Shown here: piece by piece, positions 39,048 through 45,964 of the stretch
How positions within the stretch are numbered: position 1 is the first letter of the stretch
Layout of the letters: each line of letters opens with the position of its first letter
Origin: Phaeosaccion multiseriatum
Lineage: Eukaryota; Protista; Ochrophyta, other classes
Assembly: GCA_965112735.1 (NCBI GenBank)
Contig: OZ218956.1
Coordinates: 3,720,001 to 3,784,000, forward strand
Length of the DNA: 64,000 nucleotides
Reading direction: 5' to 3'
Program-made: the position numbers and the translations under genes
Notes under the pieces: generated by a model
Seen by the model: only the letters and a program-made list of their open reading frames with translations
Told to the model about the DNA's origin: nothing
Databases searched by the model: none

Positions 39048-39105
<58 letters not shown>

Positions 39106-39403: not shown

Positions 39404-39539
39404 AATACAGCTGCTACGGAGGTAAATACAGCTACTACGGAGGTAAATACAGCCCCTTCAGCTGCTACGGAGGTAAATACTACGGAGGAAACTACAGCTG
39501 CTACGGAGGTAAATACTACGGAGGAAACTACAGCTGCTA
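39404..39539. repeat. Compound tandem repeat (CAGCTGCTACGGAGGTAAATAC-type units) 3' of the EamA stop
   Basis: CTACGGAGG(T/A)AA recurs six times with variable spacers. Confidence 0.85.
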
Positions 39540-40149: not shown

Positions 40150-40688
40150 CTCACAACCAGATTAACAGACCAGAATAGGACATTCAACATCCAATCTCTC
40201 CGCAAGCCACATCTATCATGGACTCGAGGTAAGGTTGCACTATCGAGTGTCGCCCCTGGGGCTGTTCTTCGCCACGGCCACTTGCGTCTCACGAGCCCCA
40301 AGCTCCCCATTGCTGCACGCTGCCTGTCAATTAACCGCTAACGCTTCTTATTTCCCCAGTCTTTGCCAGTCTTGTACGGCTGCTGACTGACACACCACTT
40401 CTACTCTCCTCTCCTTCGCGCCATCTACACGCGCAAAAATGTGACGTAGCGGACTGAGAGATCGAAAGAAGAAAGGAAGAGAAGGAGGGAGGAATTTTTT
40501 ACTTTTAGGCACGCGGATGGCACCCGAAATGGAGGCCCACTCCACACAGGGAGGTCGCTGCTTGTCACATGTCGCCGCGGCCTTTAGCAGTAGGAGCAAG
40601 AGCTTCGTCTTAGAATGGGGCTCCCAAGGTTGCGGACTTTCAGGGTGTCAGCCACGCAAGGAGGAAGGAACAGCAGCCTTGCGATAGG

Positions 40689-43600
40689 ATGAGACGGTCT
40701 CAAGAGAAGAAGAGAAGATCTCTCATAGCAGTGCTTGCCGCCTTCACGGCCTCCACCAGCAGCGGCAAGACCAGCTGCTGCAGGGCCCTCTCCGTCCCCT
40801 GTTTGTCTGGGGTAGGGACATCTGCAACGAATACGATGAGCCGCTCTCTTGTCCGGGCGAGGGACGTGGGGCGGAGCTTGCACGCCGTTCGCACGGGCAG
40901 TCGCCGCCGAAGACGTCCCTACGACCCTCCGTGGATGTACATGAGCCACCGAGACATCTTCGAAAGCAGCGCGGGACAGAGACCTGCCTTCAGCGGGGAA
41001 GGAGGCTCGAGCAGAAGGGAGAAACACAGCAGCATTGGCGCCAGAAGCAGCACGGCAATGGGGGCAAGCACCAGCAGCGGTAGAAGCAATAGTAGTAGTA
41101 GTAGTAGTAGTACTAGTACTAGTACTAGTACTAGTACTAGTAGTACTAGTAATAGTAGCGGAAAGGGTAGCAGCTTCCGAGGAGTGGCGAGGAGGGCCGG
41201 GGATAGGTGGAGTGCGAGCATCACCACAAAGGGAGAGAAGACTTCCTTGGGTGTGTTCGAATGCGAGGTGGAGGCAGCGAGGGCCTACGACCAGGCCGCC
41301 AGACAACTGCGTGGGCCCCACACGAAGGTCAACTTCCGAGACGGAGAGATGAAGGGGCTACACACGGCGACAGGGCAGGTGGGGGGAACAGGAAGCGGAC
41401 ACGCGGCCCAAGCCCAGGATAGTCAGGAGCTTCCACCGCTAGGCAGCAGCGTTGATGTGTCCACCCCGCCTGTACCCCTGGGATCCCAGCTCACAGAATT
41501 CGACGACGCGGAGGATGTGGACGACTACGAGCGCCACGTGCGGCGGCTCCAGGAGGGGCAGCGAGTGCACCCCTACTGGGCCGAGCAGCTGAGGCGCCTC
41601 CACAAGACTAACGCACGCAATCTCGTACCGCTGCTCTCCGCGGACAACGCGCTGGGTCACCCCGCCAGCGAGAGCCTTGTCTCAAGCAAGAGCCTGTTCA
41701 GCTGGGTGCTGCAGCAGAAGGCCGTGCGGCCCACGTGCGTGTTGCTGGTGCGTGTGGGTGACTTCTACGAGGCTTACGGCGTGGACGCTGTCATGCTCGT
41801 GCACCACGCCAACCTCAACCCCATGGGGGGCAACACGCGGGTGAGGCCAGTAGCTCAGTAGCCCAGTGTCTCAGTGGAACGGGTCAGCGGCTCAGTGGGT
41901 CAGTGGGCCGTCCATCCATCCATCCATCCATCCGACGGTGGGAGTGGTGAACTCTCCTTTTAGAGGCGAGGTCTCTCTCTGTCCTCCTCCCAAGCCCTAA
42001 CCCTAGCGCTAACCGGCAACCAACCAGCCGCCCCCCCCGAGGGGGGTGCTTGGAGGCGACCCTTAGCACAGTCCTCTCCTAACCGTGCCCCCCCCCCCCT
42101 CTCTCTCTCTGCTGCTCTCCCCCTCGCCCACCTGCCCCATCTACAGGCGGGCTGTCGCAAGGACGATATTCAGCAGACGTGCAATTCCCTCACCTCCGCC
42201 GACTTGAGCGTGGCCGTGTTCGAGGAGCAGGACGGGGAGGGCTCTAACAAGGGCCCCACCCTCAAGAACAAGCTCAAAGTCCGCTTCTTCGCTCAGGTGA
42301 GGTGGGGTACACGGCACCCCCCAAGCACAGCAAGCAGAGACCCCCCCAATCTTCTCCAACCTTTCCAGGGCAGGGCAGGCTCGGACTAACTCGTGGGGCC
42401 CTTCTTTGCGGGACTTTTGTGTATAGTGTATAGTGTGGGCAGTAGGCGGCCTTTTGTGCCCCCTCGGGGGTCTCACCGTATCATTCCATGATGCACGCCT
42501 CCATGCGCCTCCCTCCCTCCCTCCCTCCTTCTTTCCTTCCCTTCCCCCTCGCCCCTCTACTGCCGGACAACTAACACTTTCAGGTGGTGTCCCCTGGGGA
42601 CCCAAACTACCGCAACGCGCTCTGCCTGCGCAAGGACAGCGTGGGCTACCAACGGAGCAGGCCCTACGTGGGACTCGCGCAGTTCAACGACGGTTTCATG
42701 CTGGCAGAAGTGTACACTGACGAGCTGCGAGTGGCTGTGAGTGAGAGGCTCACGAGGGAGGCGCTGGCGGCGGCGATGGACCGCATCGGGGCGGTGGAAC
42801 CACTCTTCGTGCAGGGGGTCAGGCCATCGCACTTCAAGGGGGCGAGCTTCCAGGTGGGTCACGGGTGACGTGTGCTAAGGTGCATGAGGGTGGGGTATGG
42901 TGCAGCCAAGGCAGGCTCCGAGGGAGGGAGCGGTAGGTAGGTAGGTAGGTAGGTAGGTAGGTAGGTAGGTAGCCTCAGGGAAGGAGGAGGGAGGGTCAGA
43001 GCGTACTCCGCTCATGCTCCCTCGCACCTCCTCTCCTCCACCTCCCCTGCCCTCCCACAGCACCACGAGGCCAAGAGTATGGGCAGCAGCAGCTCCAGCT
43101 ACAGCGCGCAGGCCTTTCCCGGTGCCGTGGTGCAGCAGGTGTCTCTGCTCCTCGGCCTGCCCGACGAGCAGAGCCGGCGCTTCACCCTGGTGCCCACGCT
43201 CGCCGGCGTGGATAGCCCCCGGCCGCTCTACACCAACACAGCGAAGGAGATTGGACTCTTGTGCAGTGCCCACGTGCCAGGGCTGGTGGAGCACCTCCTG
43301 CCCGCCAACGCCCCTGCCTACTCGCGCCGCTTCCTCACAGAGACGCTAGTGGTGCCCCCTCCCTACCGTGTGGCCGACGAGATGCAGCGGCTGCTTGTGG
43401 GCCTGCTGCAGCTGAGGGAGGTGGGATTGCCTCCCATGTGTGTCATCCCTCTCGGCAAGGTGGTGGGCCTCCTGACGGCGAGGCAGGCCAACGTGCCCCT
43501 GTTTAGAGAGCTTCATCAGTCGCTCGGGGCGCTGCTCGTAATGCTCGGAGACCCACCGTCAAAGGAAGAGGGTGAAGGGGAAGGAGGTCGAGGTACACCC

Positions 43601-45964
43601 CGGCGTGGAAACCCCTACTCGGCGCTGGTGCCGCCCCTGCTGGAGCTGGCCAAGCACCGCACGGGCATGCCCATGAGCGAGGCCCGCCTCAGAGAACGCG
43701 CTCTCGCCGTCATGGGGCACATCGAGCAAGTAGTGGTGGTCGGCTCCTCCGACGGCCCCAAGGGGGTCTCTACCTCCTCCTCTACCTCCTCCTCTACCTC
43801 CTCTACCTCCTCCTCTACCTCCTCCTCTACCTCCTCCTCTACCTCCTTCTCAGGCTCAGACTCGGGCTCTCCTGGAGCAGGCTCTGCGCAGACCGCGGCC
43901 ATTCGGGCGGTGTTGGAGGGCTTCCAGGCAGCCAACGAGGCTGTCTTCCGAGGGCAAGTGCACAGAGCGCATCCAAGGCTGAAGGGCGCCTTCGAGCAGC
44001 TGGACCAAAAGGCGGACGAGTTGGTGCTACAGGTGGCGCAGGACTTTGGCGGCTGTGACTTTGGCCGAGACTTGCGCCACGACCTCCGGAGCAACGTTAT
44101 CAGCCTCGCCAGACGGCCCCCCGCCGGAGTGGCCGAGGCGGACAAGGGAACTACGCGTGTTGGTTCTCCTGAGCCAGCAGAGACCACGTTTGTGCACCCT
44201 GTTGACTACAAGAATAAGGTGCTGCGGACGCGCTGGACCACTCCGGGTGTGCAGACCGCTCTTAGCGCTTACCTGCAGGCCGTGGCGGGGGTGGAGGGGG
44301 CGGTGCTACTGGAGCTGCAGGGGCTGAGTAAGTTGCTGACCGAGGATATGCCCACCATCACTCTGACGTCACACTGGGCCGTGGTGGCGCACACCGCGGA
44401 GGCTCACGCAAGGCACTGCCACGCCAAGGGGTGGTGCGTGCCCACGCTACCGCCCTACCGCCGCCAAACCCCGCATCAGAACGAGGAGGGAGGGGAGGAA
44501 GGAGAGGAGGAGGAGGAGGAGGAGGAGGGAGGAGCGAGTCAGCTGCAGCTAAGGGCCCTGCAGCCGTACTGGATGCGCAGGGGCGAGGCGGTGCGGACAG
44601 ACGTGCGGCTGGGCCGGGAGGTGTTTCTGCTCACGGCCCCCAACATGGGAGGCAAGAGTACCCTCATGCGCTCGACAATGGCCGCCGCCCTGCTCGCCAA
44701 CGCAGGCCTACTCTGCCCCGCCGAAGAGGTATGTGTGTGTGTAGGGGGTGGGCAAGGTGTGTGCTTGTGTGTGTGGATGATGTGTGTGGGCTCTCTTGGC
44801 ACATACAAGAGAGGAAAGGACACACACACGCTCTTGACTCGTCGTCGACCCCCCTACCCTCTCTTCCTTCCCTTCTAACGCCCTCCCTCTTCCCCTACCC
44901 CTACCCAGGCGACGGTTCCTCGCTACGACTCCTTCTTCCTGCGCACCTCCGGCTACGACGACCCCGCGGAGGGCAAGAGCGCCTTCGCCATGGAGATGCA
45001 CGACGTCAAAGTGCTCTTCAGAGACGCCACAAACCGCTCTCTGGCCATGCTGGACGAGCTCTGCAGGGGCACCTCTACAAGGGATGGTGTACCCATTGCA
45101 GGGGCCGTGCTGGAGCGGCTGGCCGCCACGCCTGTGAGTTGCGTATTTGCCACGCATCTTCACGAGTTGTTCGACATGCCTCTCCAGTGGCACAACATTC
45201 GATTCATGCGCATGCGGGAAGAAGCAGCAGGTGGTGATACAGCAGCGAGGGGTAAGGCGGAGGGGGGTTACCGCTACACGTACCGCCTAGAGGAGGGCCG
45301 CTGCGAGGACTCGCACGCCCTGCTCACGGCAAGCAGGTACGAGGTGCCCGCTGACGTCATTGAAAGGGCCCAAGCGCTCAAGCCGCAGTTTCAGGCCGCC
45401 TTCGGAGAGGGCTTCAGCAGCAGCCAAGAGGAACACAAGTATGCAGCGCATGGAAAAGGCCGGGGCGGCACGGCAAGAGAGAAGAGATTGCCCCCCTCGG
45501 GCATGCTGGGGACAGCGGTGCCGGTGTCTGTGTCTGCCCGCAGCTTGGCAGACGCTCGGCAACTGCTCGCCGAGACGACGGGGAGAGGGGTCGGCGACGT
45601 TGTGGTCGTGGCCCCGCGCTTCTCCTTACCTGTGGCGCTTTCTTCTCCGCCCTCCGCCAGCCATATGGAAAGCAGCAGCAGCAGCAGCACCAGCACCAGC
45701 AACAGCAACAGCACCAGCACCAGCTATCTCTACGTGCTGAGACACACGGTGCAGGGCTGGGTGTACGTGGGCGAGAGCGACTGCATGGCCCAGCGGCTGC
45801 AGCAGCACCGGCGGAACTACGGCGCCGAGGGGCTCGAGACGCTGGTGCTGGCGGTGGGTGACAAGAGCACGGCCCGCAAGCTTGAGACCGAGGCCATTCG
45901 CGCCTTCAAGAGAGGAGGCTTCGCGCTCATCGCAGAGGGGGACGGGGGGCGCAGGCTGGACTGA
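40689..45964 (+). CDS. MSH1: Organellar MSH1-type MutS (mismatch-binding, ATPase, GIY-YIG) with an N-terminal AP2 domain; exons 40689-41840, 42147-42296, 42584-42853, 43061-44728, 44909-45964
   Basis: AP2: FRGV..RWSASI..LGVFECEVEAARAYDQAARQLRG..VNF. MutS-I: VLLVRVGDFYEAYGVDAVMLVHHANLNPMG. Walker A TAPNMGGKST, GKSAFAMEM, Walker B LDELCRGT, FATHLHEL. GIY-YIG: YLYVL..WVYVGESD..QRLQQHR..RKLETEAI. Confidence 0.92.

Follow-up and report, generated by a model that had tools for sequence, protein, structure and literature searches.

MSH1, which joins MutS to a nuclease and protects organelle genomes in plants and many algae, is the main candidate to explain why rates of mutation and ectopic recombination are very low in the organelle genomes of plants. 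A mismatch, double-strand-break and recombination model has been put forward for the enzyme, and plant-like MSH1 is also present in stramenopiles (10.1101/2020.02.13.947598; PMC12292046). We analysed a stretch of 64,000 nucleotides, hereafter the window, from Phaeosaccion multiseriatum (GenBank assembly GCA_965112735.1, contig OZ218956.1, positions 3,720,001 to 3,784,000 of the forward strand), in which a predicted MSH1 gene lies at 40689-45964. P. multiseriatum is an ochrophyte (stramenopile) alga, and the gene is a nuclear one. Sequence comparisons supported its product as a plant-type MSH1, with MutS domain I, MutS domain V and a GIY-YIG nuclease domain, that carries an extra AP2 domain at its N-terminus. 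As far as could be found, this AP2-MSH1 fusion is rare and undescribed.

The predicted gene has five exons on the + strand, and all of its introns are GT-AG and in phase 0. The joined coding sequence was 4296 nt long (1431 codons), and a frame and length check found one stop, at the end. An in-frame stop is located at 40611, 5' of the first ATG (40689), and from that ATG the GC content at third codon positions (GC3) was at coding level across exon 1 (0.65-0.88). The open reading frame of exon 1 runs from 40689 to 41861, and the AP2 domain and MutS_I share it without interruption. The exon 1/2 junction gives NPMGGNTR/AGC, at a place where relatives have NPMGGKxRAGCP, and MutS domain I continues through exons 2-3, alignable to relatives. 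Sequence searches were run exon by exon, with exon 4 split into 43061-43783 and 43829-44728. The features of the gene are as follows.

40689..41840, + strand: exon 1, residues 1-384, with presequence, AP2 domain, linker and the start of MutS domain I; GT donor at 41841
40689..40745, + strand: signal-peptide-like N-terminus, MRRSQEKKRRSLIAVLAA/F; hydropathy peak 2.6 at residues 11-20
40746..41090, + strand: S/T/R-rich, transit-peptide-like stretch; residues 20-90 hold 19 S/T, 13 R/K and 3 D/E
41091..41159, + strand: AGT/ACT coding microsatellite, giving a Ser/Thr run before the AP2 domain (Tandem Repeats Finder, translation)
41169..41336, + strand: AP2/ERF-type domain (Pfam, phmmer, alignment, AlphaFold2, Foldseek)
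41337..41567, + strand: non-conserved linker with an acidic patch at its end (alignment with the homologue P0032, described below)
41568..41840, + strand: conserved helix region before MutS_I (HPYW...LVPLLSADNALG) and the start of MutS domain I
42147..42296, + strand: exon 2, residues 385-434, MutS domain I continued (AG/GT sites, phase 0)
42584..42853, + strand: exon 3, residues 435-524 (tblastn to the metagenome loci L002 and L024)
43061..44728, + strand: exon 4, residues 525-1080, core region and Walker A
44909..45964, + strand: exon 5, residues 1081-1431 and stop, remaining MutS domain V ATPase and GIY-YIG domain
45725..45961, + strand: GIY-YIG nuclease domain (YLYVL, VYVGESD, RLQQHRR, KLETEAI)

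Sequence comparison together with a modelled fold confirmed that exon 1 carries a genuine AP2 domain. The Pfam family PF00847 matched residues 162-209 of the exon 1 reading frame (E 1.2e-6, 29.1 bits), and a phmmer search against the PDB returned AP2 domains exclusively, with WRI1 (7wq5, E 3.3e-12) followed by ERF096, TEM1 and AtERF1; the E-values to solved AP2 domains ranged from 3.3e-12 to 2.7e-5. Alignment with 59 other AP2 domains showed that every nearly invariant column of the family is kept. The AlphaFold2 model, which was built on this 60-domain alignment, had a mean predicted local distance difference test score (pLDDT) of 82 and consisted of three strands (16-19, 23-30 and 33-40) and a helix (43-58). 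Its best Foldseek matches in the PDB were the AP2 domains of TEM1, AtERF1, WRI1 and ERF96 (probability 1.0, template modelling score 0.67-0.77), and it superimposed on AtERF1 with a root-mean-square deviation of 0.9 Å over 58 columns. The closest AP2 sequences came from eukaryotic multi-AP2 proteins (Cymbomonas, Pleodorina, Picozoa and many unnamed), not from phage HNH-AP2 proteins, and a search of the ESM Atlas gave no usable match. Basic residues are retained on the sheet of the domain. An earlier note on this DNA, made from the letters alone, had described a complete AP2 motif at about 41169-41336 in the same exon and frame as the GDFYE motif of MutS; the Pfam, phmmer and fold results and the single reading frame all bore this out.

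The remainder of the protein is a plant-type MSH1. With exon 1 alone, Pfam MutS_I was matched at residues 339-379 (E 7.3e-6, 26.6 bits, above the gathering score of 20.6), and the F-x-E mismatch motif, GDFYE, lies at 41757-41771. Pfam MutS_V spanned the end of exon 4 and exon 5 (E 1.4e-21), with the Walker A sequence APNMGGKST at 44636-44662 in exon 4, and exon 5 matched the ATPase domains of MutS, MSH2, MSH3 and MSH6 in the PDB, down to E 3e-17. The Pfam GIY-YIG match was weaker (E 2.5e-4, 21.7 bits), and in an alignment with ten MSH1 C-termini the pattern Y..YVGE..R..H..E was conserved and its E invariant. The homologues retrieved were MSH1-like proteins of Chlorella, Prymnesium, diatoms, Alexandrium, Chromera, Vitrella, Cyclospora and Phaeothamnion, which is in line with where plant-like MSH1 has been reported (10.1101/2020.02.13.947598; PMC12292046). 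The ATPase and GIY-YIG domains thus follow the AP2 domain as the earlier note had placed them, with coordinates accurate within a few bases (GIY-YIG begins at 45725), and all four domains that it named for checking (AP2, MutS_I, MutS_V and GIY-YIG) were matched by Pfam across the exons of the gene.

The same domain order was found in other genomes. When exon 1 was searched against 1.84 billion representative proteins, one of them, P0032 (1286 residues), aligned from the AP2 domain to MutS_I in a single stretch. The P0032 gene was found on three metagenome contigs (L001-L003). At this locus (L001/L002) the presequence, the AP2 domain, MutS_I and the core as far as Walker A are in a single exon of ~3.8 kb, and two more exons carry the remainder of domain V and the GIY-YIG domain. 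A scan of metagenome contigs yielded four more fusion loci, three of them from one species (L020, L022 and L024) and one from a related species (L016). In all four, the AP2 domain and the region before MutS_I share one open reading frame, which is followed by collinear MSH1 exons. The fusion order is therefore collinear in two further lineages, P0032/L002 and L024/L016, and is no artefact of the assembly studied here. At 7400-11700 on L002, adjoining the AP2-MSH1 gene, there are protein-kinase fragments and a gene for TATA-box-binding protein; the contig has a GC content of 70%. These neighbours confirm L002 as a eukaryotic nuclear contig.

The two related species allowed selection to be estimated segment by segment, at synonymous divergences (dS) of about 0.5-1.1. 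Between L024 and L016 the ratio of nonsynonymous to synonymous substitution rates (dN/dS) was 0.019 in the AP2 domain (dS 0.86), 0.063 in the region before MutS_I, 0.33 in the presequence and 0.48 in the linker. Of the N-terminal segments, the AP2 domain is thus the one under the strongest purifying selection in this pair, and in the relatives its codons are therefore translated in the MSH1 frame.

Among MSH1 proteins at large the fusion is uncommon. A Pfam scan covered residues 1-450 of 52 MSH1-like proteins, which came from diatoms, haptophytes, alveolates, green algae and metagenomes; P0032 alone had an AP2 domain. The earlier note had not recognised the architecture from plant MSH1, and the absence of AP2 from 51 of the 52 proteins agreed with that; the thought that the fusion might already be the annotated norm in this lineage failed on the same count. 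Among first-exon fragments, those closest to the window, at 51-53% identity, have a complete presequence and lack an AP2 domain. A protein homologue search with the Phaeothamnion fragment gave seven matches, none of which was a brown-algal MSH1. Our literature search found no paper uniting MSH1 or MutS with AP2 in the sense of a fusion, and an AP2 domain goes unmentioned in two papers on MSH1 (10.1101/2020.02.13.947598; PMC12292046). P0162, P0180, P0168, P0169, P0182 and other MSH1-like proteins of the diatom clade have 260-360 residues before MutS domain I, without a Pfam match. Long N-terminal additions may be common in MSH1 outside plants.

In a tree of a 138-column MSH1 core block, P0032 and L024 were joined with strong support, next to a haptophyte group. 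An approximately unbiased (AU) test on an MSH1 block gave p = 0.525 for the three AP2-bearing proteins as a single clade, which is therefore not rejected. In a tree of 60 AP2 domains, constraining the four MSH1-linked AP2 domains together gave a tree of higher likelihood than any reached by the unconstrained search. The data are compatible with one ancient fusion followed by losses.

Ochrophyte plastid presequences carry an ASAFAP-type motif. The signal-like N-terminus that the earlier note placed ahead of the AP2 domain was recovered here as a hydrophobic start with the hydropathy peak of 2.6, and the stretch that follows it, at 40746..41090, matched no Pfam family. All three fusion lineages have a hydrophobic start and then an AxA-like site that is followed by F or L; the cleavage-like sites are AVLAA/FTAS in the window, ALSRS/FAPTS in P0032 and ALA/L in L024 and L016. 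Because the signal-like start, the F/L site and the S/T/R-rich, acid-poor stretch fit presequences of the ASAFAP type, the N-terminus appears to point to import into a complex plastid. The labels "organellar" and "DNA-targeting" for AP2-MSH1 are ones that we infer.

The reading that we prefer, with a probability of roughly 0.65, is that the gene encodes an AP2-tethered, plastid-targeted nuclease for mismatch and recombination surveillance, on a plant-type MSH1 base. The predicted chain consists, in order, of a bipartite plastid-type presequence, the AP2 domain, a flexible linker (~75-130 residues), MutS domain I, the core, domain V and the GIY-YIG domain. The protein would be imported into the plastid, and perhaps into the mitochondrion too, where the MutS part would look for mismatches or aberrant recombination intermediates in the DNA of the organelle. 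The GIY-YIG domain would then cut, and the site would be repaired by homologous recombination, as in the plant MSH1 model; with MutS and GIY-YIG both intact, this is the simplest reading. The AP2 domain was probably recruited from among the many transcription-factor-type AP2 proteins of the host itself. Held by the flexible linker, it may serve as an extra anchor on double-stranded DNA, which would either keep the enzyme longer on the DNA of the nucleoid or bias it towards certain sequences.

Several observations weigh against this reading. The Pfam scores of AP2 and GIY-YIG fall just short of the gathering scores, at 29.1 against 33.3 bits for PF00847 and 21.7 against 22.6 bits for GIY-YIG. 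The targeting motifs were read by eye. An in-frame Met at residue 221 directly follows the AP2 domain, and an isoform lacking AP2 could be made from it. The introns were present in all four sequencing runs found, which belong to one study, so these are DNA reads and not RNA. In the MSH1 tree the window protein took no firm position near Phaeothamnion and did not stand beside P0032 and L024, and two independent fusions are possible. Finally, alignment with ERF096 showed that several of the residues with which plant ERF domains contact bases have been exchanged in the window AP2 domain; we take these to be W154, E160, R162 and W172 of AtERF1. For this reason GCC-box specificity is not expected, and the domain might have another binding specificity or even bind RNA in place of DNA.

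A more far-reaching proposal combines a single early origin of the fusion in ochrophytes with an AP2 domain that steers the MutS and GIY-YIG parts to defined plastid sites (repeats, origins or recombination hot spots). We regard this combination as unlikely. If it were true, the steered AP2-MSH1 would be a natural targeted editor of organelle genomes, and its AP2 domain the first shown to act on plastid DNA.

It could also be that the AP2 domain stands outside the working protein, through a start further downstream, Met221 for example, or an unrecognised intron, and that the enzyme is an ordinary MSH1. Such a protein would resemble the first-exon fragments of other algae that are most similar to the window, which lack AP2, and the position of Met221 immediately after the domain would suit it. 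However, the AP2 domain is intact, with all of the nearly invariant positions of the family, a targeting-like N-terminus follows Met1 and none follows Met221, and GC3 is coding-like from 40689 on. The fusion is, moreover, conserved and selected in relatives. Given the coding GC3, the collinear fusions and the purifying selection on AP2 in relatives, we consider it improbable that an intron takes the domain out or that the start lies 3' of it.

Equally doubtful, in our view, is a site-directed nuclease in which AP2 gives sequence-specific cutting, as in HNH-AP2 homing endonucleases, and which is not a general mismatch sensor. The F-x-E motif and Walker A are intact, so the MutS machinery has been kept; the nearest relatives of the AP2 domain are the eukaryotic multi-AP2 proteins and not phage proteins; and the gene is single-copy, nuclear and intron-bearing, without a sign of mobility. 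In favour of such a nuclease are the known use of AP2 as the targeting module of free-standing HNH endonucleases (PMC2248197), the occurrence of GIY-YIG as a homing-endonuclease fold and the fact that the strongest constraint in the N-terminal region falls on AP2.

The changed ERF-type contacts would also suit an AP2 domain that binds RNA or a protein partner and links MSH1 to transcripts, R-loops or another component of the nucleoid. Mitochondrial AP2 proteins of Toxoplasma bind fragments of ribosomal RNA (PMC11652630), and Foldseek gave weak matches of the AP2 model to two Toxoplasma mitoribosome chains, 9hqv_Yn and 9i05_XH (E 0.45 and 1.4). The matches to DNA-bound plant AP2 domains were far stronger in both sequence and fold, though, and the remaining protein is a DNA enzyme, so that this explanation too has little probability.

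Three other explanations were set aside: the collinear conservation and the dN/dS values speak against a chance continuation of the reading frame; for a separate AP2 gene upstream, only ~35-75 non-conserved residues stand between the AP2 domain and residues 250-291, where homology to AP2-less MSH1 proteins begins; and a giant-virus origin of the metagenome loci is countered by their introns and presequences.

Simple repeats were recorded in and near the gene. Perfect tetranucleotide repeats occur in intron 1, (CCAT)n at about 41910-41935, and in intron 3, (GGTA)10 at 42932-42972, and a TCC/TCT/ACC coding microsatellite in exon 4 (about 43770-43850) gives a Ser/Thr run, as does the AGT/ACT one at 41080-41158. 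Tandem repeats of 21 and 36 bp are located at 39404-39539, ~1.2 kb 5' of the MSH1 start; they yield repetitive open reading frames on both strands and appear non-coding. Still further 5', at 39051-39101, is a (CA)25 microsatellite.

A natural MSH1 in which strong selection maintains an extra module in several lineages of algae makes it possible to study by comparison how the enzyme finds and holds its substrate. It raises the questions of what the AP2 domain binds, what effect it has on the sites cut by the nuclease and why most lineages do without it.

Compared with plant-type MSH1 (Arabidopsis CHM/MSH1 and the homologues in stramenopiles, alveolates, haptophytes and cryptomonads), the window protein is alike in its F-x-E MutS domain I, its domain V, its GIY-YIG domain and its putative organelle presequence, and differs in having an AP2 domain after the presequence and ahead of MutS domain I. 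This AP2 domain has its fold in common with the AP2 domains of AtERF1 (1GCC), TEM1 (7ET4) and WRI1 (7WQ5), with which it is 38-42% identical. Unlike the AP2 domains of plant and algal transcription factors, it is present as a single copy, has an organelle-type presequence ahead of it and a repair enzyme attached to it, and shows several changed ERF base contacts. The HNH-AP2 homing endonucleases of phages and cyanobacteria (PMC2248197) likewise combine AP2 with a nuclease in one chain. In the window protein, by contrast, the nuclease is GIY-YIG (a Pfam scan of the exons of the gene gave no HNH match), a full MutS lies between the two, the gene is a non-mobile nuclear gene of five exons and the AP2 domain is of the eukaryotic type. 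The proteins mtAP2-1 to 4 of Toxoplasma and other Myzozoa (PMC11652630) are small and bind ribosomal RNA, unlike the repair enzyme of the window, and the likeness seen is one of weak fold matches; they nevertheless provide a precedent for an AP2 domain that works inside an organelle. After these mitochondrial proteins, AP2-MSH1 would be the second case of a "nuclear transcription factor" domain in an organelle.

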